A stretch of DNA of 64,000 nt from Leidyana gryllorum EB-2025a (Eukaryota; Protista; Apicomplexa). Positions 26,010-64,000 of the stretch are shown here, in pieces (position 1 is the first letter of the stretch; every line of letters starts with the position of its first letter). The stretch is taken from NCBI GenBank assembly GCA_048772705.1, contig JBLWGC010000208.1, positions 186,001-250,000 of the forward strand. Direction: 5' to 3'. Both the position numbers and the translations under genes were made by a program. The notes beneath the pieces were generated by a model. It searched no databases. It had not been told where the DNA came from and saw only the letters and a program-made list of their open reading frames with translations.

Positions 26010-26044
26010 AGATCGAACACACACGCGCGACGCGCGCGAACACG

Positions 26045-39445: not shown

Positions 39446-41596
39446 ATGAAAATACCATTACCATCCGTGGAGCGCTCGCGACGACCGTTGTGCGTGAGAA
39501 GCCTCTTTTCGGCCTTGTCTATGATGCCGGTGGAAGGGGATGTTGGTCAACAGGATACTGCAAGGCTCAGTGGGGCGACCAATGGTGATCGGTCCCACAT
39601 TCCAAGCGCCAGCGACTTAGGCGCAGAAAGACGACGTCTCTCTAATTTCCCGAATCGACAAGTCCAAGCGTCGCCTCTCGACCCTGAACCACTAATTCGC
39701 CGTCGCAGGTCGCGGCGTGAACGTGATGCTCGTTATAGGCGCGGCCGTTCTCACCCCCAAGGATGGGTGCAACCGGTAGAAGAGGCTATCGAACGCGTCC
39801 GCGCCGCCTTGTCGACGTATCCGGAGGTCGGGCTGCAACACGGCGGGCGGGCCGGCGGCGAAGAAGTATCCCGCCGCCTCGATGCGGCTGAAACGAGTTT
39901 GCACTTTGCCCAAACCTCTGTGCAGAGATACCTGGACGAAGTCGCACGTCAGCCGCGCGAGGAGATTGAGAATTGCAGAGTTTCAACGGACTCCTCGGTC
40001 GAGTTGGAAAGGCCGGTCTCAACTCAACTCAGAGTGCCCTCGGCTTCATTGATGCCATGGCAGATGGAAACACTCGGCGTCACGGTCCAACCGGTGTCTC
40101 GGGTCCAACTGGAAACACTGGAACCAACGGGCATCACGAGTCAGTTGGGTGCGGTCCAAGCGGTGACTCCGGTCCAACTGGAAACACTGGAACCAACGGG
40201 CATCACGGTCCAACCGGTGTCTCCGGTCCAACTGGAAACACTGGAACCAACGGGCATCACGAGTCAGTTGGGTGCGGTCCAACCGGTGTCTCGGGTCCAA
40301 CTGGAAACACTGGAACCAACGGGCATCACGAGTCAGTTGGGTGCGGTCCAAGAGGAAATGGCGGAAAGACTGCGCGTCACGAGTCAGATGTATGCGGTCC
40401 ACATGGAAATGCTGGAAACGCTGGACGCACTGAGCCCCATAACTCCGCTGCTTCTAACAGAACTGGAAAGGCTGGGAGTACTGCGCGAGGATCCCTTTCC
40501 GACAGCCAGAAATCAGACTTGGCGGGGAGGGACAGCAAACCGACACCACCCCAGGACGATGGCACAGGAAGACACAGTTCCGACTAGTTGGGAATGGCTG
40601 CGGGTAATTGATGAGCCACCCCCAAGCTACGACGAAGTGGTCGCACAGGATGCGGATGCCGATGCCGAATGCCCACCTCCCACTTACCAGGATGTGGTAG
40701 ACGCGACGTCGAGGCTGGCAGAAGCGGCCGCGACGGATCTGGCGTGTCTGGAATTGGCTCAAGGTGCTCTGCTGTTGGATGACCGTTCTGTTTTGTACTT
40801 GGACGTAGGAAAAGATCGAGGCATATGTGTTGACAGTAACGAAGTTGTTCAATACGCGATTGACTTCAACGGTGGGGTACTCCGGGTGGGGCCACTGCCT
40901 TGGTCTGGAGAACCGCTATCCGACTACGTCACAAACCCCGAAGAGATGAGCTTACTTCTGGACTTGATACAGCCCGACCTCACTGATGACCTGTCACTAG
41001 TGAGACGTCACGTAGAGACAGGGGAACTATTGTACTGGTCATCTCCCTCCGCACCCGGGCTCGAAGTATCAGAAACTGAAGAGGAGACGGCAGTCTCCGA
41101 TCAGCTTCAGACAGAGAGGCAGCCACATTTGGAATCGGGTTACTTCTACTGGGTTGGTGATGGGACTCTCTACCGCGTGCCTGACAATCTGGTGATGGGT
41201 GATGATGTTTTAGAGCAGGCTGAAAAGATCTCATCTGGAATCGTTGGTAATATTGAAGAGGGATACCTTCACTGGATGGAAGGTGAGGTGGTCAAGCGCT
41301 GCCCCATAGAAGTGGGAAGGGAAGCTGCGAGCCTTACGCCACGGAGACGCGGTGACTCGGGCCAAAGAAGGGAACGTCCTGACTCGGCCCAAAGAAGGGG
41401 ACGTCCCGAGTCGGCAACACCGAGTAGGAGACGCGGTGACTCGACGCAGAGAAGCGGCCGTCCCGAGTCGGCACCACGGAGTAGGAGACGCGGTGACTGG
41501 GGCCAAAGATGGCCGGAGCCAGCCGAGTCAGATAGTAGCGACTGCGCTCACCCATCGTGCGAAAGATGCATAGAGAAATATGGGGATTATGTTTGA
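39446..41596 (+). CDS. Orphan intronless repeat-containing protein with two PPxY motifs
   Basis: Long ORF with first ATG at 39446. Internal repeats, PPPSY and PPPTY, and Arg-rich C-terminal repeats. Confidence 0.75.
40062..40420 (+). repeat. Coding minisatellite ([12 protein letters not shown] / SQLGAVQ / VQPVSR units) with 9-nt sub-periodicity
   Basis: Four copies of ggtccaactggaaacactggaaccaacgggcatcacg plus linker units. Confidence 0.9.
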
Positions 41597-42253: not shown

Positions 42254-43888
42254 ATGCGGTGGACACAGAGTGCTGCTCTTCTTTCATGGACTGCCGTCAT
42301 AACCGCAGCGGGAGCACCAACTGTAGCCAATCTGAATGCTTGGACTCGTTGTATCCAAAGGGTACCTGTACACACTGTTTATCCCAGTGACGCGGCTTGG
42401 GCCAATGCTACTGCAATCAACAACTCGGCGTTCGATACTCACCCAGCAGCCGTAGTATACGCCCGTAGCACTCGTCAGGTGGCCGATACAGTCGCTTGTG
42501 CGGTGGGCAGTGGCTTCCGCGTGACCCCCCGATCAGGTGGCCATAGTTTCATGGGGTACTCCTTGGGGGGCGAGAGTGGGAAGATTCTCATTGATTTGGA
42601 ACATATCAACCACATTATCCCCGATCCCGCCACAATGTCTGTGGTGGTCGGCCCGGGAGCTCGTTTGGGTCCACTCTTCAAACATTTGTATCAGGAGGGC
42701 TACTGGACGGCCATAGGCATGTGTCCAAACGTGGGGGTTGGAGGCTATCTCCTCGGTGGAGGAATCAGCGTCTTCACTCGGTATTGGTGGTCGATCGCGT
42801 CGGACAATATCATTGAGATGACCGTAGTTTTCACCGATGGCACCATTCATCATGTCTCCAGCCAGTCTCACCCAGAACTCTTCTGGGCTCTTAGGGGTGT
42901 TGGTGGCAGCAACATTGCCATTGTCACCAATTTTAGGCTTCGCATGAGACAAAGGCCCCCTCACTTCGTCACAGCCGAGCTCGCTTGGCTCGCAAATCAG
43001 CCCCCTCCCCATTCAACTCCAAACAACGTTCAGCAGGCCCGAGAGCCCCCTCCCACCACCGATCTCGCCGCCTCCTTTTGCACTCTGCTCAATGATAGTC
43101 CGAGGCTGAGTGAGAGAATATCGTTCTTCGTCAGTCTGAACGCTGGTCAGATGAGCGGCCGATTCCTGATCAGCGAGCCGAGAGAGGCTGATCTCGCACA
43201 GTTGGCCGACTTTGTGCACACGATAGGACCGCGTGTCCATGAGGATGTGCGTGCGGCCAGTTTACCAGAAGTCCATCTGGCTATCCACGATGGAATGCGC
43301 TCTGATGTCACTTGGGAGGACTATGACGACCCAAGAGCAAAGTCACTGAGCCTTTCCTTCAGGAAGAAGTCGTACTTCATCAAGGCTGGGACAAAGTTTC
43401 CCACTTCATTCTGCCAGAAACAAGTTGAACTCGTCAACAACAGCAGCAATAAGCTCTTCGTCTTGATGGAACTTATCGGACCCGGGCAGATCAACAAGGC
43501 AGGAATCCATGACACTGCTTTCCCTCATAGGGACGCTGTGATACTTCTCAGCATTGGAGCAATGAATTTCGAGGGTCAAAAATTGACACAAAGTCTAATC
43601 GATCGTATGGTCGAATCGGGTGAACTCTTCGAGCAATACACCGACGCCAGCTATATCAATTACATTGACGACACGCAGAGAGATTGGCCCCACCATTACT
43701 ATGGATCCAACCTCTCTGTCCTCAAAGCCCTGCAGTTAGTCTACGACCCAAAGAGTGTGCTGGATTTCCCCCAGGGACTCACCCGGGTACCTGCTGCCGT
43801 TATATTGCAGCCGAACAACGACCCACGGTCTCAAAAGTGGGTCAAGTCGTCCACCCTGCGTGCGCAATTGCTCGAAAACTCGACGTAG
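42254..43888 (+). CDS. Secreted FAD-linked BBE-like/AA7 oxidoreductase 1
   Basis: Signal peptide, RSGGHS, GMCPNVGVGG, LFWALRG, YINY...YYGSN...YDP. Intronless. Confidence 0.93.
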   Translation: MRWTQSAALLSWTAVITAAGAPTVANLNAWTRCIQRVPVHTVYPSDAAWANATAINNSAFDTHPAAVVYARSTRQVADTVACAVGSGFRVTPRSGGHSFMGYSLGGESGKILIDLEHINHIIPDPATMSVVVGPGARLGPLFKHLYQEGYWTAIGMCPNVGVGGYLLGGGISVFTRYWWSIASDNIIEMTVVFTDGTIHHVSSQSHPELFWALRGVGGSNIAIVTNFRLRMRQRPPHFVTAELAWLANQPPPHSTPNNVQQAREPPPTTDLAASFCTLLNDSPRLSERISFFVSLNAGQMSGRFLISEPREADLAQLADFVHTIGPRVHEDVRAASLPEVHLAIHDGMRSDVTWEDYDDPRAKSLSLSFRKKSYFIKAGTKFPTSFCQKQVELVNNSSNKLFVLMELIGPGQINKAGIHDTAFPHRDAVILLSIGAMNFEGQKLTQSLIDRMVESGELFEQYTDASYINYIDDTQRDWPHHYYGSNLSVLKALQLVYDPKSVLDFPQGLTRVPAAVILQPNNDPRSQKWVKSSTLRAQLLENST

Positions 43889-44019
43889 TGCTGATAACAA
43901 CTCTTTTGGTCTCTTAACATTCGCTGCAAACCAACTGCTTGGGACTCACGAAATTGAGAGACCCAAACGGGACCGGTGGAGCACTATTCATTGACTGACG
44001 ACAACATAACGTCGCAATA

Positions 44020-45531
44020 ATGAAGCTTGCAGACCTTCTGAGTAGCCTCGTGCTCTGTGCGACAACCATCGCCGGTGCCCCAGGAGACTTGGACGTCTTT
44101 CGAATCTGTATAGAGTCTGATCATCCCATAAACGTTTCCTACAACACTTCAGCTGACTGGTCAACAGCTCGCACTTCTTGGAATCTGCAATACGTGTGGT
44201 ATCCTGATGCCGTTGTCTGGGCGCGATCTGTGTCAGACGTCTCGAGTGCTGTCCGATGCGCTGTGATAAGCGGTCATCGGGTCTCAGCTCGCAGCGGAGG
44301 CCACTCATATGCCGCTTTAGGTGAAGGCGGGCAGGACGGATCCATCATTGTCGACCTCAGCAGAATGAAGTGGGTTCGTGTACATCCTGCCACACACACT
44401 GTGGACATTGGGGCGGGCACACACTTGGGATCTCTCGAGAGACATTTGTGGAAAGAAGGACGCTATTTCATGCCACTTGGGTCGTGTCAGTGGTTGTCAC
44501 TGGGCGGATTCAGCACTGGGGGCGGTATTGGATTCGACACACGGAAATACGGCCCATTCTCAGACTCTGTGATCGAGATGCAGGCAGTGCTTTCAGACGG
44601 ATCAGTGGTCGAGGTCAGTCCCACCTCTCATCCCAGTTTGTTCTGGGCCCTTCGGGGTGGCGGGGGAGGTCAACTTGCAATTGTCACAAACTTCAGAGCA
44701 CGCTTGCGACAGTCTGGCGAGAACGATTGGTACTTGGCCAAAAAGTTGACATGGCCTTCAAAGGACATGGGTCGAGTCTTCTGCCACGTTTTGAATCACG
44801 GTGTGGATCTTCACACCGACACCTCGTGGCAGCTTGCTGTGACTCCAAGAAATATCTCATTGTCAGTTTGGGCCACCGGAGACATTGCAGTCCGGGAGCT
44901 GGAGGTGACTGAGATGCTACGGGGTTTGCCTCTGGCCAGTGATGTAGAGACACATCGAGGAGACCGTCACCAAGGCTGGCGTATGTTTGCAGATCCCGTG
45001 GACCTGCCTCGTCACGCTTACAGTATCAAGAGCAGTTTGGCAATAAATACTCGGATGAGTAACCAAGTGCATCACGGCCACCCGCGGAAACACGCTTTGC
45101 CGATGTCAGTATGCGATGGGGTTCAGTACCTGCTGCACAGTGCCCCAACCCCGGCTGATCATGTGATAGTGACGTTCATTGGAGGAGGAGGAGCTCCGAA
45201 CAAGGCTCCTCGTCGTAGCAGCGCCTTTGGTCATCAGTTAACGGATTATGTTGTAGAGCCATTGGTAAAGTACGATCGGTATTTGGGGGAGGAGCATTCA
45301 GTCTGGCAGCGCAAGCTGCTGAATCTTTTGGAGCCGTATTCAACTGGTCGAGCGTATATCAATGCGATAGAGTTGGACTTGTTGGAGAATTGGCCGATTG
45401 CCTATTGGGGCAAAGAGAATATGCGGCGACTGAAGCGGATTCAACTGGCATACGATCCACACGACCTGTTTGCGAAGCCGCGTACCATCAACAAAGTTGC
45501 AGGTCAAGTGGCGTGGACGCGTCGGCGCTGA
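44020..45531 (+). CDS. Secreted FAD-linked BBE-like/AA7 oxidoreductase 2
   Basis: Signal peptide, RSGGHSY, GSCQWLSLGG, LFWALRGGGG, YINA...YWG...YDP. Intronless. Confidence 0.93.
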   Translation: MKLADLLSSLVLCATTIAGAPGDLDVFRICIESDHPINVSYNTSADWSTARTSWNLQYVWYPDAVVWARSVSDVSSAVRCAVISGHRVSARSGGHSYAALGEGGQDGSIIVDLSRMKWVRVHPATHTVDIGAGTHLGSLERHLWKEGRYFMPLGSCQWLSLGGFSTGGGIGFDTRKYGPFSDSVIEMQAVLSDGSVVEVSPTSHPSLFWALRGGGGGQLAIVTNFRARLRQSGENDWYLAKKLTWPSKDMGRVFCHVLNHGVDLHTDTSWQLAVTPRNISLSVWATGDIAVRELEVTEMLRGLPLASDVETHRGDRHQGWRMFADPVDLPRHAYSIKSSLAINTRMSNQVHHGHPRKHALPMSVCDGVQYLLHSAPTPADHVIVTFIGGGGAPNKAPRRSSAFGHQLTDYVVEPLVKYDRYLGEEHSVWQRKLLNLLEPYSTGRAYINAIELDLLENWPIAYWGKENMRRLKRIQLAYDPHDLFAKPRTINKVAGQVAWTRRR

Positions 45532-45561
45532 GGAGTTCCAAAAGGAGCGAGGTGCAGCCGC

Positions 45562-47052
45562 ATGAGAGTACGTGTTGCCACCTGGTTTCTGGCCGTTGGG
45601 TGGGCCTATGGTCAGGATCTCAAGAAGTTTAAGGAATGTATGGGGGAGAGAGAACAAGTAACTTATCGAGAGGACGATGAGAAGCAGTTTGACGATGACA
45701 AATTATCCTGGAATATTCGTCACATTTGGACTCCTGATGCTATCGTGTGGGCGGAAAATGCCAATCAAGTCAGTGAAGCGGTGAAATGTGCCTCAGAGAG
45801 TGGACACAAAGTATCACCCCGATCAGGAGGTCATAGTTATGAGTGTTTGGCATCCGGCGGTCAAGATCATGCGATTATGATAGACCTGCAGAAGATTCAG
45901 GATGTTAAGCTCGATTCAGAGGCCCTCTCAGCCTGGGTTGGCCCAGGTATACGGCTGGGAAAGCTCTACCTCCATTTATGGAGAGAGGGTCAGTATTGGT
46001 TCCCGCCCGGCCTGTGTCCGACCCTCGGGCTGGCGGGCTTCGCTCTTGGAGGCGGTGTAGGGTTCTGGTCCCGAAAATGGGGGTTAGCGAGTGATCATAT
46101 CGAAGAAATGGAAGTCGTCCTCGCTAACGGCACCCTCGCCCATGTCAGTGACACGGAACATCCAGACTTGTTTTGGGCACTGAGAGGCGGTGGTGGCGGC
46201 AACTTTGGAATAGTGACCAACTTCAAGTTACACGTCGAGAAGGCTCCCAAACAGGTTCTCGTCGTTGTGATCACGTGGGATCAGAAGGATTTGTCAGAAG
46301 TCGTGTGTCGGATGGTGGAAACTGCAGACAAAGCCGCCGTCGAAGTGGGGTGGGAACTCATTATCTATAATAACCGCACTGAACTCTGGGTCACTCTTTT
46401 GGACCCCAATGAGCGGAGAGAAGCGGAACTGACTGATCTGATAGCAGATCTGCCCCATCCACGGCGGTTCAGAGCTAATGATTTCGACTTCATGACGGCA
46501 TACCTCAATGTCTCCGACCGGCTGCATGACTCGCCCACGGCAGATGACCTCGACTTCCCGTCCAACTTTGTCACTCCGCACAAATACTCCAAGAAGAAGT
46601 CTCTGCTTATCCCCAAGGGCACTCAATTCACCAAGAAGACTTGCGATCAACTTGCTGCTAGGATTCCAGATATGGATCCACAGGCTCTGGTGATGTTCGA
46701 GCTCTATGGTGGTGCAGTCAATCAAATCGAACCCGACGCCACGGCTTATGTCCACAGAGAAGCCATCATAACACTGAGTATGGCTATTATTAGCAACGAT
46801 CCCGTTCCAGAGACGGCTGTGAAATGGCTGGAAGGCACCTTTGACCTCATGCAGCCAGTCACCAGTCCCCACTGTTACCAGAATTACATGGATCTCGACT
46901 TGAAAGATTGGGGGAGAGCGTACTATGGGTCCAATTTACCCCGACTGAAGAAGATACAAGAAGAATACGATCCAAGTGGTATTTTTGAGAAGCCACAATC
47001 TATCGCGGCTTTACCCCCCATCGAGCCCACGAACTCTCAGGATGACCTTTGA
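45562..47052 (+). CDS. Secreted FAD-linked BBE-like/AA7 oxidoreductase 3
   Basis: Signal peptide, RSGGHSYE, GLCPTLGLAG, LFWALRGGGGGNFGIVT, YQNY...YYGSN...YDP. Intronless. Confidence 0.93.
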   Translation: MRVRVATWFLAVGWAYGQDLKKFKECMGEREQVTYREDDEKQFDDDKLSWNIRHIWTPDAIVWAENANQVSEAVKCASESGHKVSPRSGGHSYECLASGGQDHAIMIDLQKIQDVKLDSEALSAWVGPGIRLGKLYLHLWREGQYWFPPGLCPTLGLAGFALGGGVGFWSRKWGLASDHIEEMEVVLANGTLAHVSDTEHPDLFWALRGGGGGNFGIVTNFKLHVEKAPKQVLVVVITWDQKDLSEVVCRMVETADKAAVEVGWELIIYNNRTELWVTLLDPNERREAELTDLIADLPHPRRFRANDFDFMTAYLNVSDRLHDSPTADDLDFPSNFVTPHKYSKKKSLLIPKGTQFTKKTCDQLAARIPDMDPQALVMFELYGGAVNQIEPDATAYVHREAIITLSMAIISNDPVPETAVKWLEGTFDLMQPVTSPHCYQNYMDLDLKDWGRAYYGSNLPRLKKIQEEYDPSGIFEKPQSIAALPPIEPTNSQDDL

Positions 47053-47384: not shown

Positions 47385-49683
47385 TTACACAGCTGTCGCT
47401 GGTGTCCAGGCTGGATCGGTCTGACCGCGATGGCTCCTGCGACGGCTGGAATGTGAACCATTCTCTTCATCGGACGAGTGCTCGTCACCGTCTCTACGCC
47501 GTCTGGAGATCCTATCTCTACGACATACTCGTGGTATTTTATGCCGTCTCCGAGGCCGGGAGCGCTTCAAAAAGCGTACGATGGCGTCCCTGAAATTCCG
47601 AGTGCGTTGCTCAATAACGTCATCGAGCTGAGTAACGAACCACTCAGGAAGTGGCGGGGAACAATCCTTGAATACTTCTTGTATGATATGGTCTCGGATC
47701 TGGATACGAGCCGGTTGCTCGTAGAACCACGCGGATTCAGAGTAGAGAAGGAGTATGAGTATCTGCGGTGGGGAAGTAAAGATGCAGTGTGTATCACTAC
47801 GCGACACTTACTTTATTGATGATCGAAATCATTACGGCCTCGAAGTCGGATTTGACTTGCGTAAAGTTGTCGAGGAGACGACTAAAATTGGGCCGACCTA
47901 AAGCGTCCAAAGCTTTGTTGTCGGCGAGCGAGAGAGGAATGATGGGGAGCATTCCGAGTTTGTTTATGGATCTTCTGACATCTCCAGCGGTCAACGTCGG
48001 TACCACAGCGAGAGGACGGATTTGTTGCTGGTATTCTGTTGACTGAAGAGTGAAGAGATCAGTCATAGCTGACAGAATGGCACAAATCTCATTATATTCC
48101 TGTGCGTTCCGAGGAAAAGGGTGATTGCCGGAAGCCTCCGCAGGGTTATCGCTCAAAGGTGGTATCTTGGGCTCCTTGGTCCCCGGTGCAAAGGTTATGT
48201 GTCGACCTCTAGCTTTGATCTGCTCGATCTTCACTTTTACCTCTGCTTTATCGTTGCTACCCTTCTGCCGTGCATCCGCGGTGCCGACAACCTCAACTCC
48301 ACCACCATCGTCCTCCTGTAACCTAACCCGCGTCCGCATTCTACTATTCGCCACGTTTGGTGGCGGCATGTCGTCCGGCATGTCGTCCGGACGTCTCGTC
48401 AATATCCCCTTTGCTGGCTTGAAATGGAGGTACATAGGCGCCAACTTGATGAGATCCGCTGGTTCACAGACTTTGGGCGGAGCTTCGGTCACCGTCGAGC
48501 GCACAGAGTCACCATCGGAATCTATGTCCACCAGTCGTGCTGCCCGTGGGTCAGCCGCAATCAGGGATCTGATCTCCGAGCTGCTACGGGGAGAGACTGG
48601 AGGAGTGCTATATGGGAAGTCCGGTGGGAAGTATTGATCCGCAGTGTCGAGCTGCGATTGATAGCAATGCATATTGACGGTGGGGAGATCTTGATAGTCA
48701 ACGATTTCCATCGGGGTGGCAATGCGGGCCCGCACGGTTGGTGCCCCATTGACTCCCTCTATAGTACCGATGACAAGGGCGTCGGTAATGGCCATCGGGA
48801 TTTCGGACCTCACTGAGAATCGAAGTCCCTGGGGCCCCCATATGTGCATGAGATGCTGTCCATCACCGACTACCGGAGCTCCGGTGCGAGACCTATCGAC
48901 CTGGAGGTGAGACATGGGAGCGACATTGTTGGTTTTGGGTGCGGTGGTGGATCGTCCGCGACTCGACCGATCGGTCTTTGTCGACCGGGCGGGATCTTCG
49001 TCGGTCTGATCAATCGGGGAGAATGGAGGTGGTTCCAAGGCGAAGGAAGGTGAGAGTTCTGCAGCAGAGGGAGGCAGTGGCATTTCCTCCATCGCATTCT
49101 CGTTCGGTTCTTCATCTTCGAACGTCGGTGACAGACGCGGGAGATCCAGTGGCGGAGGGACTGCCAATTCATCGGAAGACTCTTCAGTTGACTCGCTCTC
49201 GGGGTCCGAGACAATGGTTGGTGCTTGGCTACGGTCGGATCGCACCAATCGATGAGCGAGCGCGCGATGATGATTCCTGTAGATGGTGGCAAAGCGAGTC
49301 AGGCATTCAATGTTGTCACGAGCGCCTGGGAGACTCCTCGACATCCAATTTGTGAATCTTGTGGCAATGCCAAATTCGGGTTGGCGGCTGTCCTCCAGAC
49401 CGCTGGGCTGGGTGAAAATACAGTCATTGTCAGTTCTATCAGAACTCCGAGCTCTCTCCTGTGAGGGTATCGTCTCGAAGACAACATAGTCCATTTTGAG
49501 CAGTTTCCGCACATTGTAGTGGTCTTCGTAGACGTGAGTCGGCAAAGGCGTCCCATCTCGTTTTGAAACCAGAATGCGGAGCAGGAGTTCATAATAGTCC
49601 GAGGGTGGCAGTTGTCGTGGAATGATGAACCCGTCGAGGATCTTTTCCTCGTCACCGACAAATGATCGTTTCCGCTTCCCCAT
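47385..49683 (-). CDS. Hypothetical protein, probably nuclear, 2 exons (intron about 47763-47811)
   Basis: 628-aa ORF spliced via AAA|GTAAGT...CAG to the 47385 ORF. Basic N-terminus MGKRKR and basic C-terminus. Confidence 0.7.
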
Positions 49684-50711: not shown

Positions 50712-53547
50712 ATGAAGCCACCCATACTTCATAAGAAACGATGTGCCGAAGGTAGCCCACTCACAGTGGACTTGAAGGTTTTCGCGGCAGCACTGACTGT
50801 GTTGACGCAACCACACACAGACCAGGTGGTCGCAGTACTTTCGGAAAAGAGTTCGCTTCCCTATGACAAGCCAACGACAAACGGTCCTGTTGTATCCAAA
50901 GTCTCCAGGGCCGCCGCTACTGAGTATTGCAATTGGGTACGGGAAGCTGAACGGCTGGCATCTGAGGCCTATCTTCCGATGCCACTTATCGACCGGGAAG
51001 TTGAGTACATGAAGCATTGTTTCGATGAATACCGTAACTGGACGGAGACCATTGAGGGCCTCTCTCAATGGACCCGGGCGGATACGGTTCCTTTACGCCT
51101 TTACAAGGCATGTCGTGTGATTCTTGACCTATGCCGTCGACGAATCCACGACCTTACGATGGCAGATGGCCAACGGGCGCGTGGGAACGACTTGGTGGAT
51201 GCTGTAGCTATCGCACGGTCGTACAATCTCCTCAAAATATGCACCAGCGAAGCCCCTCTATCGCTATGGCAGCCGCTCTGGGAAGACGCGGAGAACGGAA
51301 TTTGGCAGACTTTGAAGATTTCGAAGGACAAAGCTCAAAATGTCAGACATAAGATTTGCCCATACATTCCTTCCTCGGCGATGACCGACTTTTTGCGGCT
51401 CATTACGCTGGAGGAGTGTGGGTCGGGAGAAGCAACGGGGACCCCTGGGGGAAACCAGGAAACTATTATTGTCGAAGATCAAACGTGGGAGAATGCAGTC
51501 ACCTCAACGGACACGTGGCACGGTGCAGAGACATCAGTGGAGACGTGGGAGGATGCAATAATCTCGTTAACTGACGAGACTGGTGATCAGAAGTCAACAA
51601 ATCTACCCATCAACAACTCAAACACTTTCTGGAACAGCGCTTCCATAGAGATTCTGACGTCTCTGCCCCGCGATTCATTCAGAGAGGCTACAGACTACAC
51701 TCTCCCCAAGTTGGAGCGCGGGTCTTTGGCCTGGAAGCGTCGAGCCATCATCCACACCGTCAAGAACGAAGATAGCGAACTGACTTCTCACATCACACGT
51801 GCTGCTGATGTTTGGCCCCGAATTAGGTTGCTTGGCAACAAAGACTCTTGGGTCGACAATATGCTTCACGAGCGAGGGTAAGCCGACGAGAAATAAATAT
51901 TTGTTCACAATGACCTCTCACAGAGTCAATGACCACACTCTGCTGTGGTTGGAAGAGATGCGCGAGCGTATCGTCAACAACACCCAGGAGGATCTCCCCG
52001 TACGATGCGGCTCTCGCATTAAGTATCAAGCAAGACCTCGTGTAGCTCATCGGGACAATCTGCAGCTCGGACTCGAGCCTCTCCTACTAAGAGATGGTCC
52101 AGACTGGGAGCCCCTGACGTTGAACGAGCTTATGGAACAAATTTGGGAAGAAGCAGACAGGGCTAAGGCCAAAGCGACTTTGCGCCCTGCAGAGAAGAGG
52201 TCGGTGCCCAATACTGCTGGCAAGAAAAGTCTTATTCCCATCGCGGTCCGCAATACTGCTGAGAAGAAGGGCGTTATTCCCGTCCCGCCGCGGAGTATCG
52301 CTGACAGGAAGCGCCTTGATCCCGTCTCGGTGCGAAATACTGCTCAGCAGAGGCGCGGTATTCCCGTCTCGGTGCGGAATACTGCGGAGCAAAAGCCCGT
52401 TATTCCCGTCTCGGTGCGGAATACTGCGGAGAAGAAGCGCATTGTTCCCGTCTCGGTGCGGAATACTGCGGAGAAGAAGCCCGTTATTCCCGTCTCGGTG
52501 CGGAATACTGCTCAGCAGAGGCGCGTTGTTCCCGTCTCGGTGCGGAACACTGCGGAGCAGAAGCCCGTTATTCCCGTCTCGGTGCGGAATACTGCCCAGC
52601 AGAGGCGCACTGTTCCCGTCTCGGTGCGGAATACTGCGGAGAAGAAGCGCGTTGATCCCGTCTCGGTGCGGAATACTGCTCAGCAGAGGCGCGTTGTTCC
52701 CGTCTCGGTGCGGAACACTGCGGAGCAGAAGCCCGTTATTCCCGTCTCGGTGCGGAATACTGCCCAGCAGAGGCGCACTGTTCCCGTCTCGGTGCCCAAC
52801 ACTGCCGACGAGAAGCGCGTTGATCGCGTCTCGATGCGGAGTGTCGCTGACAGGAAGCGCGTTGATCCCGTCTCGGTGAGGAGTGTCGCTGAGAAGAAGC
52901 GCGTTGATCCCGTCTCGGTGCCCAACACTGCCGACGAGAAGCGCGTTGATCGCGTCTCGATGCGAGTCGCTGAGAAGAAGCGCGTTGATCCCCTCTCGGT
53001 GCCCAACACTGCCGACGAGAAGCGCGTTGATCGCGTCCAACAGAGCACACTCTCTCTCGAGGACCAAACCAGCATTCTCGACATGTTGGCCAAGGAGTCC
53101 GCCTCAGCCGCGATGAGAAACTCAAGTCACCTCGACACGCCCGACGCGCCGGAAGTTCCACTGAAGTCGACATTTCTTGATGGGGATGTCGTCACGAGAT
53201 CGAAACTACCGGTGAAGTCAGCCTTGCCAGGGGTGGAGCGGGCTGCTAAGCCACGTCGCGCATCGATCCCTCAAAAATCCGACCATGCTGCGTCAGGATG
53301 GATGTTTCAACTGGGAAAAATCTCGACTTTGCCGAGGAAGCGTCTGGAGGATCTGACCACGCTACTGAAACGGACTATTTTATTGCCTTCCAGCGAAGGC
53401 AACCCTCAGTCGAGCGAATTTTCACAGGACCAAGATCAAAATTTATCGCAAACAAAGGTACCCAACCTGTCACCCGCGTCTCAAGATATTGAAGGACGTC
53501 CTTCCAGGTGGTCCCTTGGCCAGCTGACCCCTGTTCTATCATTTTAG
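50712..53547 (+). CDS. Orphan island family member A: leader, Trp-helical domain and 14-aa repeat array (intron 51878-51923)
   Basis: A phase-2 GTAAGC...CAG 46-nt intron fuses track ORFs 50628 and 51799 into one product of about 930 aa. Confidence 0.75.
52201..53037 (+). repeat. 42-nt coding tandem repeat, 20 units (SVRNTAEKKRVxPV)
   Basis: Counted directly: 19 units of 14 aa and one of 13 aa. Confidence 0.95.
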
Positions 53548-53838
53548 TCGTCGTATTCTAGTCAACAGTAGTACAGTTCCTGCCCGCCCAGGATGACTCG
53601 GAAGCTGTTCGTGTCCACCCCACCGAATAGCAAAGATACATGTGGGTCAGTTTATTGTACATTAAATTTTTCGTGGTAATAGCTCGGCTCGACTGTGTCG
53701 CACACCGATTGCAACAGATCATAGAGTCGAATTCTCGCTTTCGAGATTCCGTCCTCCAACACAAATACTGTTTCTCGCATCCGTCCTGGCAGTGGCTTTG
53801 CATCCCCCCCAAATGGTGGGGGTAGTGATGGATGTGGT

Positions 53839-54678
53839 GTGCGAGTCACCGCCACACTGACCTTCACTGCGATGGTTGGAGCACTTCTTCCGCCTACAGA
53901 TGGAGGAGACACTTGTGGTCAGCAGGACAATTCGGTCCGCGCTGAGGAGTCCCTCATTTCTGGGGGACTCTCCCGTCAGTCTGACGCATCGGTGTCTCCG
54001 CTAGAAAGATTGCCTACCGAGGGCTATCGCACCCATTGGTGTGAGGTCCTCCCGTCAAGATCAGACCACAAGACACCGTTGGCGAGACTGCGAGCTTGCG
54101 TGAATATCGAAGAAGCCCGAGACCGGGTGAGAAGGTACAAGTGGCAAAGAGGTGCCGTTTTACGAGGGAGGTTGAATGCTTCGTTCAACTTGGAGCAGAT
54201 ATTGATGAATCGGAAAGGCGAGAACTCGCGGGCGATCATTCCAGATAGCTGGAGAAGCCGACTGCGGATTCTCCATAATTTTGTGAGGAAAAGCTATGAA
54301 GACTACGCTCTGGGAAGCTCTCACTTCCTGATCTTCTTGGGTCAGCTCAGTTGTGATCTTATCGAGAAGATATCGGTCGAGATAGAAGACTTGGATGAGA
54401 AGTCCGATCAGCCAACCTGTATGCGATTGGCCGCAGACTTTCATCATGCTGTATTACTGCACTCTTTGCTCGTGGGTGGCGGCCCTTTGTCGTCCTGGGA
54501 GACTGCGTGGATAGGGGTGGAGGACAAACTTGGGGAGCATTGGCAAACCAAGATCCCCATGTCGCCTCGTTTTGCGTTGCATCATTTCAAAGCCATAATT
54601 GAACTCTGCCAGAAGCTCGTCACTGGCGGAGGATTGAGGGTCGAAACAGAGAGCTTAGCCCCGTGGCAATGGCAATGA
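53839..54678 (+). CDS. Orphan island family member B; start codon uncertain
   Basis: Contains both family Trp motifs. The first in-frame ATG (53872) lies inside the leader-like segment. Confidence 0.65.
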   Translation: MRVTATLTFTAMVGALLPPTDGGDTCGQQDNSVRAEESLISGGLSRQSDASVSPLERLPTEGYRTHWCEVLPSRSDHKTPLARLRACVNIEEARDRVRRYKWQRGAVLRGRLNASFNLEQILMNRKGENSRAIIPDSWRSRLRILHNFVRKSYEDYALGSSHFLIFLGQLSCDLIEKISVEIEDLDEKSDQPTCMRLAADFHHAVLLHSLLVGGGPLSSWETAWIGVEDKLGEHWQTKIPMSPRFALHHFKAIIELCQKLVTGGGLRVETESLAPWQWQ

Positions 54679-55084
54679 AGAGAGAGGAGAACAAAATTGT
54701 GCGGGCTTTGTGTATCAATTCTACTTCAAGCAGAGCCCACGAGATCTAAATCTCGGACGTGGGAGGATTAGAGGACCGACGACAGAAGACGTGCCTAACG
54801 TGCGGGGGGTGAACTTTGCAGAAGTCCCACGTCACTTTCTCAGCACGCAGGATATGCTGTCCGTAGTGAGACGAGCCTCTTTAACTCGTATCTAACTCAG
54901 TTCTAAGTCGTTTCTGACTCAATTCTAACTCGAATGTATCTCAACTAGGAGCACTTTCCAGTGATCCGCTCGTGAGAGGAAGCGTTGCACGACATCTCGA
55001 GCTCGACCTCCTCTTCACGGTTTCTCGTCATATGGTCGGTTAGAATTTTTCGGGCATCGTTCAACTACTTTAAAGAGGGCACGA

Positions 55085-56572
55085 ATGAGAGGACAATGCT
55101 GCGCAGTCGAACATCGTCAAAGCACATCTGAAGCGGATCTTTTGAGGATTGCAACAGTCATTCTCCAGTCGAGTCGGGCGCCCAGTCCCGAATCTTTGGC
55201 TTTAGAGTTCGGTAGCTCTGTGAAAAAGGGGGGGTTCTTCCAGAAGATCCGCAATAGCTTTCGCGGCAGGAAGAACTCTAAATCGTCACCTCGTCAGAAG
55301 CCAGAGAAGGACGCGTTCGGATGGGTTTTCGCTGATTCGCCTGTCAAAGAGAATCAGACTGGTCAGAAAGAAGCTGAATCGAGTTTGCCTACGTCGCACA
55401 TCTACAATGGTGCGCAACCCTGCCCCACATTTGCGTTATCTCGGCCTGAGACCACGTCACAGCCCCATTATCATAACCCACTCGAAGCCGAGTTTGAAGA
55501 GATCGAGCCCGAATGTGAGCTGCGTCGGATCCCATCCCTGATGCGCAGGAATACTGCAAAGAAGGGTGCTGTATCAACGGTTCCCCAGCTACCGACCGTG
55601 GCTGAGAGTCAGACTCAGGAGCCATCGAGCGCCCCGGACTCCGAATATATCGAGCCACATGATACTTTGATTTCTAGGAGTTCTTACAATGAGTACCAAC
55701 AGCCCTACTTCGAAGAAATCCAAACGCGTTTGCCATTGCGGGTGGCGAGCTATGCACCGGTACTGCCCATCCAACACGCAGTCTCTGATGTGCAACTTGA
55801 TGGTCGTCGTGGGATGACCAGAAACGCAGGGTGGGGGAGTGTTCGCAGACTCGCCTCTGAGGATCTCATCCGGAGTACATGGGAGCTTGCCGAGACTGCC
55901 ATTCCAGAAGATGGGGACGCGATGCAGAAATATTCGTCTTCGTTCGAGGTACACGTTGTTTTCCCGACTCCTGAGGATCTGACGAGGAATTTCCAAATGG
56001 AGGCAGCATGGGCGAAGAGAAATTTGGAAACTCACAAACCAACCAGTTGCCCGGAATTCGAGAAGCGCTACGCTGCTTTTCAGTTGGCCTGGAACACCAG
56101 ACCAACGTGGGCAGATAAACTATCTCTTTTGCAGAGTTGGTGTATCGAAGAAAGGAACGTAAACCCGGCGCTGGCTCGCTGGGCATTGCGTTGGATCGTG
56201 ACAACTTGGACTGAGCGGGTGATGTGGGAGATTATTAATTGCAGAGAAGGAAACCCTTTCGGAAGAACAAAGTCCCGAGAGTCAGCCCTCAAAGAGCCCA
56301 CTGAAGCACTGAGAGAGACTTCAACGCTGATGCACACACTTTGTCTATTCAAATTGGCTGCACAGGAAGATGATATCCAGAATTGGGACGCCAAGCGAGA
56401 GGCTTTCCTCGCCGCCTATGGACAGGCTTGGGGCGTAGAGACCTCTGCTGGTGCCCAGTCAATGATTGCGACTCGCTGCGAGAATCTCATGGATCTCGCC
56501 GACACCATTTTCACCAGACTCTCCGAGCAATCTTCTCCCCTGGTAATCCCACACAAATTGCACAGGGGTTAA
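55085..56572 (+). CDS. Orphan island family member C (MRGQCC leader)
   Basis: 495-aa intronless ORF with leader and Trp-helical domain. Confidence 0.8.
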   Translation: MRGQCCAVEHRQSTSEADLLRIATVILQSSRAPSPESLALEFGSSVKKGGFFQKIRNSFRGRKNSKSSPRQKPEKDAFGWVFADSPVKENQTGQKEAESSLPTSHIYNGAQPCPTFALSRPETTSQPHYHNPLEAEFEEIEPECELRRIPSLMRRNTAKKGAVSTVPQLPTVAESQTQEPSSAPDSEYIEPHDTLISRSSYNEYQQPYFEEIQTRLPLRVASYAPVLPIQHAVSDVQLDGRRGMTRNAGWGSVRRLASEDLIRSTWELAETAIPEDGDAMQKYSSSFEVHVVFPTPEDLTRNFQMEAAWAKRNLETHKPTSCPEFEKRYAAFQLAWNTRPTWADKLSLLQSWCIEERNVNPALARWALRWIVTTWTERVMWEIINCREGNPFGRTKSRESALKEPTEALRETSTLMHTLCLFKLAAQEDDIQNWDAKREAFLAAYGQAWGVETSAGAQSMIATRCENLMDLADTIFTRLSEQSSPLVIPHKLHRG

Positions 56573-56887
56573 TCCGTTTTTAAACCCTCCGACATCGTGA
56601 AGGGGGGGGCAGAAGCCTCGCCATTCGGGTCATTGAGGGTTAGTGGTCTCTGTACAGAGCCCTGTCGTTCCACCAAATTGGCGATTTTTTAGGGGCGCGC
56701 TGTTGCTTTGGTGTCGTCGCGTGTTGTTGTCAATGTTACCACCTCAAACTAATTCGATGAAATTTACCAATTGTCACACTCACAGAAACAAGCGACTCCA
56801 ATCTTTCCCACAAACTTTGTACTCTCTCCTCCAGAGAGACCGATGTAAGAAATTTAACTTGTTGTTTCATAAACCTCGCCTTCAAGA

Positions 56888-58633
56888 ATGAGACACCATT
56901 GGAGGCGCGCAGGGCATCAGGATGATCATCTGGAGCCCCACACTTTGACCATTACGACGGCTGTCCTACAGTCACTCCATTTGACAGACCTTCCCACCTC
57001 ATGTTCTGAGTCTTCCGGGTCTTTCTATCAAACCTTCAAGCCAGCCGGGCAGGCCTCCAGTGTTAAGGTTCCAACCGTCACGGCCTCCGGCTTCCGAGTC
57101 TCCCCTGAGCCGACGGGGGAGTCCCCCCATCAGTGGTCGCTGGAGTCTGTTTATGAATCTCAAGAGTCGCTTTCCTACTCCTTTGGTTCTGACTGCTCCC
57201 TACCAGAGACGACAGTGTCCTACAACACTGTTGATTCTCGGTCGTCTCGTCGGCCGTCGTTGGTGTCTAACTTTGGAGACGTGCTCGGCGGCATGAGGAG
57301 ATGTCGAAAGCCCAAGGTGTGGATCGAAAGACCCGCAATGATTCCGTCCTGGGACGGTGACTCGGCATCTTTCGAGTCCGAAATGATGGAGGGCACGATG
57401 AAGCCGGACACCCCCTCGACAGTGGGAACTTTTTTGGAGGCGGGAGCGATTTCAGAGACGACGCCGATGGTGACAAGACGCCGGAATAGAAAGGCACGAA
57501 AGGAACAGAATCAGTCTTGGGTGTACGAATGGGCGGACTTGACGGACAGTTTGAAGCGCACTCCCAAGCTGTCGCTATCCACCATCGAGGAGGTTTCAAA
57601 GAGCTTCAGTAACTGTAAAGTTCCCTTAGTTACCGATTCTGCGGAAGATCTCGGAACGGATTCTTCAGAATCCAAACAGCTCAGAGAGCTGATCGTAGAT
57701 TTCGATTTCGCCATGTTCACTCAGCCAAATTGGGACGGGCGTTTGCAAGTGCTGGACGCCTTTTTGGAAAATTTACCTTCTGTCGAAGTCGAGAAGCGGC
57801 TTCGGGCCTTCATTGGAGATTGGAGTCTGACCACTGTCCGCAGCACCATTGGATTGCTCCGCAATGCAGATCGAGAGGGTCAAAAGACAGAGGCGGCCGA
57901 AACGGCAGAGACGACGCCCGCGATTGCGACTTCCCAGAATGATATCGTAGCGCTACAGAAAGCTTTGATCGCACAACAGAAACTCATAGAAGGGCAGCGA
58001 CGGGCTTGGAGTACACAGAAGTGGGTAGCTGGAGGTGGCGACAACAAAGGCGAGTGCACGGTGGAGACCGCGCTGAAGGAAGTTGAGGAGGCGGTGCAGA
58101 AAGCTTACACCCTGACGAAGTTAAAAGTTGCGGCCGAGGCGTCCGCGAACGGCACCGAAGGTGTGACGATGCCAAGCGAAGCTTCGGAGACGAATGTGAT
58201 GGATGATGAGACTGCTACTGCTGCAACTACTGATCCTGGAGTGGAGGGATTGTATTCTGACTTGCTGAATGGTGTGGTCCTCTTCAAACTGGTAGCGGAA
58301 AATTGCCCATTGCAAGAGTGGAAAACAGAGTGGCAGTGTCTCTCGGATGAGCTCAAGACCGCCTGGGGCGTTGAACCACGAGTCGAAAGTACAGCTTTCC
58401 CTAATGAGTGTCTCGACCGGATCTTCCACTGGGCGGCGTGGGTGGTGCAAACGCCACAACGTAATATTCTGGAGAAACTGTTGGCAGATACAGCCGCACG
58501 AGACCCGGCGGTCGACCGCACCCCACGTGCTCTGTACCGCCCTGCATCGGTGAAGAAGATATCACCTGTACTCTCCGTCCACGAAGACGAGAAGACCGCC
58601 AATGGCTGTCTGAACAAATGCTGTATCAGTTGA
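56888..58633 (+). CDS. Orphan island family member D with C-terminal CaaX-like CCIS
   Basis: 581-aa intronless ORF with leader and Trp-helical domain, ending GCLNKCCIS. Confidence 0.8.
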   Translation: MRHHWRRAGHQDDHLEPHTLTITTAVLQSLHLTDLPTSCSESSGSFYQTFKPAGQASSVKVPTVTASGFRVSPEPTGESPHQWSLESVYESQESLSYSFGSDCSLPETTVSYNTVDSRSSRRPSLVSNFGDVLGGMRRCRKPKVWIERPAMIPSWDGDSASFESEMMEGTMKPDTPSTVGTFLEAGAISETTPMVTRRRNRKARKEQNQSWVYEWADLTDSLKRTPKLSLSTIEEVSKSFSNCKVPLVTDSAEDLGTDSSESKQLRELIVDFDFAMFTQPNWDGRLQVLDAFLENLPSVEVEKRLRAFIGDWSLTTVRSTIGLLRNADREGQKTEAAETAETTPAIATSQNDIVALQKALIAQQKLIEGQRRAWSTQKWVAGGGDNKGECTVETALKEVEEAVQKAYTLTKLKVAAEASANGTEGVTMPSEASETNVMDDETATAATTDPGVEGLYSDLLNGVVLFKLVAENCPLQEWKTEWQCLSDELKTAWGVEPRVESTAFPNECLDRIFHWAAWVVQTPQRNILEKLLADTAARDPAVDRTPRALYRPASVKKISPVLSVHEDEKTANGCLNKCCIS

Positions 58634-58907
58634 CCGATTTTAGGACATCAAAGTGGAACGGGGTGTTGAAGGCCAGACGAAAGGCCATGTAGAGCGGGCC
58701 CCGTACTCTGGGCTGCTCGATGAATAGAAGGTGAGCTTTCTCTGGTCGTCTGCCTCATTTTCCTATCCGAAGCTCGAACGAAGGAACGTAATTAGGAAAA
58801 TGGTTCCACCACTTTGTGCATACACCCCCATTAGCTGTTACGCACGACTTTGCGTTTTTTTTGTGCGGACTCGTTTCGATTTTTGCATTCTTGAGACTAA
58901 TTGTACA

Positions 58908-59672
58908 ATGAGGGGACAATGCTGCCAAGCCGCACGTGAAAATCGTCGCTCATCGCATTCCAATGCCTTCACGCTCACAGCCGTTCTGCAGTCTCTCGGA
59001 AGCAGCAGCTTGTCCGTGATTCAAGACGATGAGACAACCTCCGTTCAAACGTCTCCTTCAACACTAACGGCATGGGACAAGTTCAGGAACTCGTTCCGTA
59101 CTGGCAGGGCGCGGTCCTCATCGAAATTGAAGAAGCAATCGAGGAGCCTCTCCGCCTCCCAAGCATCTCTTGGCTGGGAAGAAGAGCCACTCATCCAGTC
59201 GCGCTCAAATAGTTTGACCAGGACCCCACCCCCACCGCCCCCACTAAGTAACAAGCCTTCGTACAGAGGGGCTCACCCTTTCGCACCGGTGGCTGAGACA
59301 GAAGCCGATGTCACTTTGGCAGCCAAGAATGATCCCATTGCAACAGCAGAAATAGAAAGTCAGTCGAATGGGGAGACCAAGGCGACAATCAGCCAGCCCA
59401 ACCAAATTTGTTCAGATGCTCAACTCGTCAGTCAGGACCTCCTCACCGAGCCACTCCTCACCAAGCCAACAGTCCCGACGACAGGAGAGCAGCAACAGGC
59501 GGAACAAATCTCGGGTGAAATGAGTGAGCAGCGGATCGCTCCCGCAGCCGCCGGGCAGGACGCCTCCTCATCCCAGGTTACAATGGTTCTCACTGAATTA
59601 CTAAAAGCTGCATGGACAGCCAAGCGGGCTGCCGCAGCTTCCCAGAATACTGTCAATACTCGGAAGAATTGA
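58908..59672 (+). CDS. Orphan island family member E (MRGQCC leader, lacks the helical domain)
   Basis: ATG at 58908. N-terminal similarity to member C. Confidence 0.75.
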   Translation: MRGQCCQAARENRRSSHSNAFTLTAVLQSLGSSSLSVIQDDETTSVQTSPSTLTAWDKFRNSFRTGRARSSSKLKKQSRSLSASQASLGWEEEPLIQSRSNSLTRTPPPPPPLSNKPSYRGAHPFAPVAETEADVTLAAKNDPIATAEIESQSNGETKATISQPNQICSDAQLVSQDLLTEPLLTKPTVPTTGEQQQAEQISGEMSEQRIAPAAAGQDASSSQVTMVLTELLKAAWTAKRAAAASQNTVNTRKN

Positions 59673-60408
59673 GTTGAAGGTGTCATTTTTTGATATCACA
59701 GCCTCAGCCGATGGTTCTTCTTGACTGTCGCGGATACACAACCGCGTCCAGTAACATTTGAAAAATCAACTCCATCGAAGGTGGGAGTAATCGATTGACC
59801 GGTCCCAAAACATCTTACCTCCCCAGCCGACGAGCGCAGATTAGTCAGAGCTTTGAACGGAACCCTAAAAGCGGTTGTCTAGATTCCCTCAAAAGTAGAT
59901 TTGGAAAGTACTGTTACCAAAAGCTGACACTCTCCGCATCAGCTCGTCCAGCAGGCGGCTGGCAGAAGTGCCTTCGCGAGGACAATCTGTGTGCCACGAG
60001 TGTTAAGAACTTAATGAAAAGCTTAACAAAGAAGAGAATCATTTCGACCATTGCCCTCGGATGAGTGATGTCCGTCTCACACCAATTACAGAAGAGAGAC
60101 GGCCCAGCTGCGATGGTCTCCACCGACAGATAGCTATGCTCAATTTCACTGATGAGGAGGAAAGTTTCACGCAACTTTGGTGGTGCGAATCTCATCTCGT
60201 TTTGTCAGGATTCCCAATTCAGCGAGACATGGCAGTCTGCGGTAGGATGGGTGCAGAAATGTGAGAGACTGCGACTGAGACCTGTCAGAATACTTCAGGG
60301 TGGCGTTACTGCCGCTCAATTGACACTTTAGGTGTGGGAGGCTGCCCCGAGTCCAAACACCGACATTGAATTGCGACATTGTCTTTTTTATCGCAATTTT
60401 CAACCCCG

Positions 60409-62610
60409 ATGAAGGTTCCCTGTTTGCTGAAGGAACATGGCGAGGTGCACGGGAGCCCAACCCATGGCATTTTGCTCCCAAGTGCCACTCTACTCGCCCA
60501 AATGTTCCATGTGGGGGCTGGCGATCAAGTCTACGGAGACGCGAGTACGTCTGAGGGACCCCCGCCGCTCTCGAAGGATCAATTTAGGATGCGTCAGCAG
60601 CACTTGAAACTATTTCCAGTCACCACAGGCCCAGCTTCCGATGGCAGCCGCCGCCCGCGTCGGCAATCAGCTTCATATGTTGAGGTGGTTGATATGATTC
60701 AACGAAGGTTCCGCAGCTCAACAAGTGTTAGTGATACGGGTCACAGATTTTACCCCACGGAGTCCAGAACGTCGTTGTATTCTCTCTACCCGGAGAGTCA
60801 GGACGACTTTCACTGTTCAGTGAGCTGCGCGGGGTCTCAGGTGGGTTACAACAGAGGTATCCTGCCGGCCGAGCAATTTGTAAACTTTGATGGAACTATC
60901 CTACGTACACGAGCGGTGTGTCGAAACATCTTCGAGTCCGCCGAAGACTGGGTCAAGTCGGTAAAGACAGACGTGAGACTGCTGACGAAGAAGCTCGAAG
61001 AAATCGGGCTGAACGACGCGGCGTATGCACGCGGCATTCGAGAATCGGACAAACGTGTCAACAACTTTTTACTCCGCAACGGTCAACTAGCGGACGCGAA
61101 CAGAATTATCCTGGAGAAACCTGGGTTCGCCCAATACAGGTGCACTCGGATTTTGCTCCACTACATCACTCAGATTATGGAGTCGCAACTTCACAACATG
61201 CTTTGTGGCTACGAAGGCCTGACAAACCTTCCCGTACCAGTCGAGGGTGTTGTGGTTTTACACCGGGGAATCACCCTGTGTTATCTCGTACAAAGTGTCA
61301 AGTCAGAAGACTGGAACGCGATATGGAAGCAAGCGACCAAACTGCAACACAAACTTGCTGCAGCGATGGGATCCACCGTGGAGGAAGTCCTCGGTCTGAC
61401 CAAAAGCTTCGGTGATGATGTTTATTCTGCCTATTGCTCGCTCAAGCAAGCGGCAGTCGATCTCGATACACAAAGTCCTCCTGGGCTACAGCAGCAGATG
61501 GCGGCGATCCAACCCTTCCCTGTTCCCCCCCCTCACCTATCGGCATTCGCCCGACAGCAGCGACCGCAATCCTATCAGCCAAGAAAGGTTCTGCAACCTC
61601 AACCCTCCAGAAAGGTCCTGCAACCTCAGCCGCCCAGAAAGGTCCTGCAACCTCAGCCGCCCAGAAAGGTCCTGCAACCTCAGCCGCCCCGCGTGCCACC
61701 AACAATCAATTCGCAGCCTCAAGCCGTGAGAAAGGCTCAGCCACCCCAGTGCCCTCCAAAGCCAACAACTACTATTCTGCAGCCTCAGGCGGTGAGAATG
61801 GCTCAGCCACCCCAGCACTCCCAAAAGCCAACAACTACTATTCTGCAGCTTCAGGCTGTTAGGGAGACTCAGTCATCCCCGCGGCCTCAAAAGCCTCCAA
61901 GAATTCCGCAGCAGCTTCAGGCTGTGAGGAAGACTCAGACGCTTCCGCGGCCTCAACAGCCAACAACAAACTCGCAGCAGCTTCAGGCTGTGAGGAAGAC
62001 TCAGACGCTTCCGCGGCCTCAACAGCCAACAACAAACTCGCAGCAGCTTCAGGCTGTGAGGAAGACTCAGACGCTTCAGCGGCTTCGAGAGCCAAGAAAT
62101 GAAGACAAGCCTCAACAAGATTCCCGCTCGAGTTTAGACCCTCGAGGCGCTTCCCGTACATCTGTATCAGAAGTTCCGACTCCGACGAGAAGCGAGAACC
62201 CACGCAACTCTGACGCCAACTCCCTTTACGGTTCCCTCTCCGCTCCCCCAGTTGCAGCAGCACCCCATCACCACCACGAGCCGATTTATTCCGGATGCTG
62301 CGCCGCCCCCCATTCGCAGCTCGCACCCACCTACCTCCATCCGCCTCAATACCCCGCTGTCACCCCTCTCCTTTCCTACACACAGTCCGCTTATGTACCA
62401 TTGCCACCCTTTCACCCGCATGGTGTCCCCCACCAGCATGGAAGCTGTTATGCGGCCCACTCACCAGCCACTCGACATCCTAATGGTGGCTGCTCGGTCA
62501 CTTACGAAGCCATCCCTGAGAGTCCACCCCCCCGTCGGTCGAAGTCGTCCAAAAAGGGACTTGTGTCGCGAGTCATGTCGGCCATTCGTAATAAACCACC
62601 CCGACGATGA
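60409..62610 (+). CDS. Orphan island family member F with Gln/Pro-rich repeats
   Basis: ATG at 60409. Leader, divergent copy of the second Trp motif, and repeat arrays. Confidence 0.75.
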   Translation: MKVPCLLKEHGEVHGSPTHGILLPSATLLAQMFHVGAGDQVYGDASTSEGPPPLSKDQFRMRQQHLKLFPVTTGPASDGSRRPRRQSASYVEVVDMIQRRFRSSTSVSDTGHRFYPTESRTSLYSLYPESQDDFHCSVSCAGSQVGYNRGILPAEQFVNFDGTILRTRAVCRNIFESAEDWVKSVKTDVRLLTKKLEEIGLNDAAYARGIRESDKRVNNFLLRNGQLADANRIILEKPGFAQYRCTRILLHYITQIMESQLHNMLCGYEGLTNLPVPVEGVVVLHRGITLCYLVQSVKSEDWNAIWKQATKLQHKLAAAMGSTVEEVLGLTKSFGDDVYSAYCSLKQAAVDLDTQSPPGLQQQMAAIQPFPVPPPHLSAFARQQRPQSYQPRKVLQPQPSRKVLQPQPPRKVLQPQPPRKVLQPQPPRVPPTINSQPQAVRKAQPPQCPPKPTTTILQPQAVRMAQPPQHSQKPTTTILQLQAVRETQSSPRPQKPPRIPQQLQAVRKTQTLPRPQQPTTNSQQLQAVRKTQTLPRPQQPTTNSQQLQAVRKTQTLQRLREPRNEDKPQQDSRSSLDPRGASRTSVSEVPTPTRSENPRNSDANSLYGSLSAPPVAAAPHHHHEPIYSGCCAAPHSQLAPTYLHPPQYPAVTPLLSYTQSAYVPLPPFHPHGVPHQHGSCYAAHSPATRHPNGGCSVTYEAIPESPPPRRSKSSKKGLVSRVMSAIRNKPPRR
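61579..62090 (+). repeat. Two coding arrays: 27-nt (PRKVLQPQP) x4 and about 66-nt (QQLQAVRKTQTLPRPQQPTTNS) x about 6
   Basis: Direct tandem copies. gctgtgaggaagactcag recurs at 66-nt spacing. Confidence 0.9.
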
Positions 62611-63268: not shown

Positions 63269-64000
63269 CTAGTTCTTCTCGGAGAGGAAGGTGACGCCGG
63301 GCAGCTCTTTGCCTTCGAGGAGCTCCAAAGAAGCTCCACCACCAGTGGAGACATGAGAGATCTCGGATGCCTTGCCAGCGTTCTCAACCAAAGAAGCGGT
63401 ATCACCGCCACCAACGATTGAAACTGCACCAGCCTTGGTAGCCTCAATCACAGCGTCCAGGAAAGCAAGGGAGCCCTTGGCGAAGTTGGGGAACTCGAAA
63501 ACACCTTGGGGACCGTTCCAGCAGATGAGCTTGGATGACTTGATCATCTCAGCGGCCTTGGTGCGAGAGGCGGGACCGCAGTCAAGTCCTTGCCAGCCTT
63601 CTTCAATGCCCTCAGCATCAGTGACAGTCTTAAATTTAGCGTCTGGGTTAAAGTCATCAGCGACGATGAAGTCAGACGGGAAGAGCAGCTCAACGTTCTT
63701 GGCCTTGGCCTTCTCGATGAGCTTCGGGACGATCTCAGCACCCTCCTTGTCGAACAAAGAGTTACCGATGGCCATGTTGTCCATCACCTTCTTGAAAGTG
63801 TAGGCCATACCACCGCCGATGATCATCCGATCGACCTTGTCGAGCAAGTTCTCGATGAGCTGGATCTTGTCCTTGACCTTGGCTCCACCGAGGATGGCCA
63901 AGAAGGGACGAGGAGGGTTCTCCAGAGCCTTGCCGAAGTACTCCAGCTCCTTCTGCATCAGCAAACCAGCAGCCTTGACGGGTAATTCAACTCCCACCAT
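63269..64000 (-). CDS. PGK: Phosphoglycerate kinase, C-terminal part (5' end beyond the window)
   Basis: [46 protein letters not shown] and [16 protein letters not shown]. Confidence 0.98.

Follow-up and report, generated by a model that had tools for sequence, protein, structure and literature searches.

A tandem array of strongly divergent paralogues with a predicted helical domain in the gregarine Leidyana gryllorum

In the genome of Leidyana gryllorum EB-2025a (assembly GCA_048772705.1, 15.5 Mb in 237 contigs), a stretch of 64,000 nucleotides (nt) from contig JBLWGC010000208.1 (C208, positions 186001-250000; hereafter the window) carries at positions 50712-62610 an array of seven long frames on the + strand, which reduce to six genes, A-F, if the frame at 51799-53547 is, as predicted, the second exon of A. 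Four of these genes (A-D) are paralogues with the motifs of a common domain, hydrophobic leaders recur at one position near the N-terminus, and no homologues were detectable in the collections searched. Judged from its sequences, the family is real and new at that level, and its kind is a known one, that of apicomplexan gene clusters that are lineage-specific and encode a helical core. Its products might be membrane-tethered adaptors acting inside the parasite, a reading that we favour with some reserve.

A common domain in divergent genes

An earlier note on this DNA had aligned 35 amino acids (aa) of A-D without gaps, and the quoted core segments do lie at 51210 (A), 54439 (B), 56327 (C) and 58262 (D), with that of F at 61258. 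Pairwise scores are weak (z of 5.5 for B-D, 3.0 for C-D and 2.7 for A-B). For the four genes together, the best ungapped block of 35 columns, found unguided, is the same core shifted by two columns, and its score of 202 compares with 58.5±13 (maximum 116) for local shuffles and 57±23 (maximum 137) for 150 quartets of unrelated real open reading frames (ORFs). The consensus that had been written for this core fits B and D in full, whereas C lacks its PL and second Trp and A its last Trp. The upstream Trp motif, also claimed as shared, was recovered unguided but weakly (126 against 93±9, maximum 117), and between it and the core lies a third block, an amphipathic helix that begins with [FWYV]-[IL] 25-28 residues past the first motif. 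Because MAFFT misaligned D and F, the blocks were anchored by coordinates, and in an ordered four-block leave-one-out comparison A, B, C and D each outscored all 142 background ORFs as well as all shuffles. Identity across the domain blocks is 9-22%, and at the DNA level the only similarity among the array genes is between C and E, over their first 29 nt; this agrees with the old tandem expansion around a conserved helical core that had been suggested. The conserved columns are nearly all hydrophobic, and none holds an invariant polar or catalytic residue.

Gene F probably carries a divergent form of the domain. Proposed as a match with one gap, it passes the block comparison narrowly, and only when the first block is dropped (9.2 against a background maximum of 6.5, with the blocks at their expected positions). 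F lies under the background in the ungapped scan, was not retrieved by a leave-one-out hidden Markov model (HMM), and gave an E-value of 0.64 in hhalign. Gene E lacks the domain, which was found neither in its protein (an HMM scan over the contig included) nor as a remnant downstream.

Predicted fold and searches for relatives

The domain is predicted to be a five-helix bundle of about 120-150 aa with the conserved Leu and Trp residues as its core. In both predicted models the helix boundaries are in register with the motifs, and in gene D the domain is interrupted by an insert of about 110 aa.

No named domain had been recognised earlier, and the scans agree: Pfam and PHROGs gave no domain match, two sub-threshold Pfam matches being set aside. 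Likewise, no relative was found by word-based searches for homologues of the C and F domains, among PDB sequences, in viral and metagenome scans (including IMG/VR), by Foldseek against PDB and BFVD, or in the ESM Atlas by features; by shape, the Atlas gave template-modelling (TM) scores under 0.5 by query. The sole match of a profile search against 1.84 billion representative proteins was rejected as an artefact, in which 12 fn3 repeats each contributed about 4 bits. Further copies were found neither with an HMM, run on some 235 kb of contig C208 (from 86001 onward, together with the window), nor genome-wide by motif patterns or seeded searches, the latter failing even to link C with D. Since the known members differ so strongly, searches of the genome would tend to miss others of equal divergence, and further copies may exist elsewhere.

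Leaders and candidate membrane anchors

Proteins A, C, D, E and F start with M-K or M-R and have a hydrophobic stretch of 9-11 residues at residues 19-31, where only 4 of 86 other ORFs show a hydrophobic peak. In C, D and E this leader contains T-x-[VI]-L-Q-S at an equal offset, which is significant among these three but not over all six genes. The flanks, which had been thought unique to each gene, are unrelated and low-complexity apart from this leader motif and the N-terminal 90 aa common to C and E (34% identity). The leader of D is Thr-rich, and that of C contains Arg. Gene B has no in-frame ATG ahead of its leader-like stretch (53845-53889); its first ATG, at 53872, lies inside it. No classical N-terminal signal peptide was seen in the array proteins, the hydrophobic peak falling at residues 19-23 and not in the first 12; nor do they contain the export motifs PEXEL (RxLxE/Q/D), RRL or RxLR, and none of their segments has the length of a clear transmembrane helix.

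The C-terminal CCIS of D is the sole valid CaaX motif among 90 ORFs (about 235 kb), and three prenyltransferase-beta loci are encoded in the genome, so D combines a C-terminal CaaX with a prenyltransferase in the same cell and may be prenylated. C and E have in common a basic amphipathic helix and an N-terminal Cys-Cys, the latter a feature of 3 of 82 background ORFs; the C-terminal helix of this type in F has a counterpart in 1 of 94 background ORFs. Prenylation and palmitoylation occur on the cytosolic side of membranes. Since such lipid anchors act there, the array proteins should either never enter the endoplasmic reticulum or cross fully into the host cytosol.

Gene models and genomic setting

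The features of the array are collected in Table 1. That its genes number six and are co-oriented, as described earlier, depends on the intron of A: the first stop codon falls within a donor site, GTAAG, and removal of a 46-nt intron that ends in CTCACAG would join A in frame to an ORF of 14-aa repeats. An intron of similar size seems to interrupt a cathepsin gene nearby. The two exons were analysed separately. The repeat, Val/Pro-rich and charged, has no match in Pfam and is loosely alveolin- or articulin-like.

Table 1. Features of the array (window coordinates)
Feature	Position	Strand	Remarks
Gene A, exon 1	50712-51877	+	Begins with M-K; residues 23-33 hydrophobic; helical domain at about 50994-51392
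Gene A, intron (predicted)	51878-51923	+	46 nt; GTAAG...CTCACAG, in frame
Gene A, exon 2	51924-53547	+	Val/Pro-rich basic 14-aa repeat (42-nt unit, about 52109-53080); without helical domain
Gene B	53725-54678	+	Stop-to-stop frame; predicted five-helix domain about 54250-54603
Gene C	55085-56572	+	495 aa; Cys-Cys at the N-terminus; leader at 55139-55171; amphipathic helix (basic) at 55229-55261; domain at about 56051-56527
Gene D	56888-58633	+	581 aa; leader at 56945-56974; domain in two halves, at about 57731-57860 and 58226-58420; CaaX (CCIS) at the C-terminus, more Cys just upstream
Gene E	58908-59672	+	254 aa; paralogue of the C N-terminus (Cys-Cys, leader, amphipathic helix); without domain
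Gene F	60409-62610	+	733 aa; leader at 60469-60501; domain (probable, divergent) at about 61120-61450; Q/P repeats; basic amphipathic helix at the C-terminus, 62551-62589

The contig is 320 kb long and continues for 70 kb past the end of the window, which places the array in its interior. Beside it lies a PGK fragment (63269-64000) whose nearest matches are alveolate enzymes: the high-scoring named ones, from Blabericola, Gregarina sp. Pseudo9, Vitrella and G. niphandrodes, are 70-73% identical, and the top match of any kind 74%. A PGK tree placed it without support.

Several other genes of the window are of separate interest. Three tandem intronless ORFs with classical signal peptides (42254-47052, +), which from their sequence we take to be berberine-bridge-type FAD-linked oxidases, lie near the array. 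An intronless orphan at 39446-41593 (+) starts with M-K and has internal repeats, RRL motifs and, at residue 19, a hydrophobic stretch, but lacks the core domain; a further orphan at 47797-49683 (-), of 628 aa and divergent from gene A, has a basic N-terminus and no match in Pfam and PHROG scans. Long low-complexity, His-rich ORFs (25874-28422, +) lie upstream of a cathepsin L-like gene, and another His-rich protein, with a signal peptide, is encoded at 652-2046. The ORF at 11823-13112 (-) has a motif similar to F-x-x-L-x-R-I-E-L-P-L-x-G-W, the leucine-rich-repeat-like motif of a large dispersed family that forms tandem arrays with a period of 2.6-4.1 kb on contigs C2, C9, C33, C36, C47, C121, C136, C173, C202, C204, C213 and C230 of this genome, these matches outside the A-F array being judged from the matched segments alone. 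A 2.7-kb unit recurs in tandem at C2:171129-198639, in about 11 copies, its matched portion being AT-rich. An ORF with RNase H and integrase-like motifs (C55:22719-25799) is probably a long-terminal-repeat retrotransposon.

Possible functions of the array

The explanation that we prefer, while granting it somewhat less than an even chance, is that the array encodes a lineage-specific tandem family of intracellular, membrane-tethered adaptor or scaffold proteins, whose lipidation, location and adaptor role we infer from sequence. Every domain-bearing member would hold one non-enzymatic five-helix bundle amid long low-complexity arms, and most members would be tethered to a parasite membrane (pellicle or endomembrane, for instance) on its cytosolic side: D by prenylation, C and E by N-terminal palmitoylation, and C, E and F by their basic amphipathic helices. 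The leader at residues 19-31 might act as a common docking or targeting helix, and the paralogues would differ in anchor and arms. Because the conserved positions are hydrophobic, no candidate catalytic residue is seen, a long insert is tolerated and the arms are low-complexity, a protein-binding module at a membrane appears plausible. The parasite's own pellicle or endomembranes would be the simplest location, a suggestion nearly as likely to be right as wrong, and apicomplexans are reported to prenylate trafficking proteins of their own (PMC10470541). However, several observations weigh against these adaptors: confidence in the fold models is middling, a clear anchor is missing from A and B, internal amphipathic helices are frequent (18 of 94 background ORFs), and the leader, with a hydrophobicity over 9 residues of 1.5-2.6 against 1.8-2.5 in the signal peptides of the neighbouring flavoenzymes, is as hydrophobic as these and may therefore be a recessed signal.

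The last point leads to a rival that we consider unlikely, though not negligibly so, in which the proteins are exported, PHIST-like and host-directed effectors: the leader would be a recessed signal, the host cytosol would be reached, and D would be prenylated by host enzymes, as is known for bacterial CaaX effectors (PMC2916131). The architecture fits the description of PHIST proteins (an all-helical domain of about 150 aa, identity below 30%, hallmark Trp, a recessed signal, if the leader is one, and repeats; PMC4811531), the leader position is rare among other ORFs, three secreted flavoenzymes are encoded close by, and Cryptosporidium has clustered secreted families (PMC8687662). However, no export motif was found in the array proteins, the leader is Thr-rich in D, interrupted by Arg in C and not significant as a sequence motif over six genes, and cleavage would remove the Cys-Cys of C and E, which precedes the leader. 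Moreover, the array is internal on its contig beside PGK, and it is small and old, unlike a family that is young and dispersed; of the Cryptosporidium families, too, the WYLE and SKSR members tested were not in the host cell (PMC8687662). The failed profile and PEXEL tests lower the chance that the family is a PHIST, not that it works like one, and, given the hydrophobic stretch at a fixed position, the proteins may yet be exported. Improbable is the bolder version, a first gregarine family of host-exported effectors of PHIST-like design and independent origin, with a PEXEL-free recessed leader and swapped anchors (CaaX, Cys-Cys, amphipathic helix) for different host membranes. The array defines a new family of small helical domains with no detectable relative among the representative proteins searched. 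If exported, it would offer a first handle on how gregarines export proteins and remodel their hosts, and would point to convergence with PHIST; if internal, it would be another lineage-specific array, mainly of annotation value.

Also improbable is that a known helical domain (a FAT/HEAT-like unit or the GH84 O-GlcNAcase bundle) with an ordinary cell function has decayed past recognition in a lineage so isolated, without a close relative in the collections, that many of its genes are orphans. The helix arrangement of the GH84 bundle (2cbi, 5diy) resembles the B model along most of its length. There is little to recommend distant homology to the Plasmodium gametocyte protein Pfg27, tandem-expanded for the sexual stage: Pfg27 (PDB 1n81) is the top structural match of one model, but with a weak Z and 7% identity, it is outside the best 50 structural matches of the B model, and PF09216 gave no match, one of these searches being weak in that its control matched nothing anywhere. 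An endogenous viral or mobile island, suggested by the co-oriented, nearly intron-free orphans, is scarcely credible, given that intron-free genes are common across the whole window, where GC content is about 52% throughout, that GC and GC3 (third codon positions) of the array agree with host genes, that the predicted intron is of host type, and that PHROG, BFVD and IMG/VR gave no match.

Comparison with known systems

The analogy with oomycete RxLR-WY effectors, proposed earlier, is a loose one. Both conserve a hydrophobic core under a variable surface; however, the array proteins have no signal peptide with RxLR, no WY module was found in them by profile or fold, Pfam and PDB giving no match, and they hold a single larger bundle instead of tandem small modules. 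Pfg27 (PF09216) is all-helical and apicomplexan, and its tandem array in P. malariae is a precedent for tandem expansion (10.1101/052696). The MEDLE, WYLE, SKSR, FLGN and GGC families of Cryptosporidium are likewise clustered, lineage-specific paralogues with a short unifying motif and much disorder (PMC8687662), but they have N-terminal signal peptides, of which none was seen in the array, and show no sequence match to it.

Plasmodium PHIST/PRESAN (PF09687) is closer architecturally than the WY fold. It shares with the array a single all-helical domain of similar size, Trp/aromatic hallmarks, paralogues less than 30% identical, a recessed hydrophobic stretch and repeat-rich flanks (PMC4811531), and the predicted models, of middling confidence, show such a domain, all-helical, about 150 aa long and with its Trp and aromatic residues conserved. 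No solved PHIST domain is among the best 50 structural matches of these uncertain models, the array has neither a PF09687 match nor PEXEL, and its domain has five predicted helices against the four of PHIST. Whereas PHIST is a large subtelomeric family, the present one forms a single internal array of six genes, with CaaX and Cys-Cys as its anchors.
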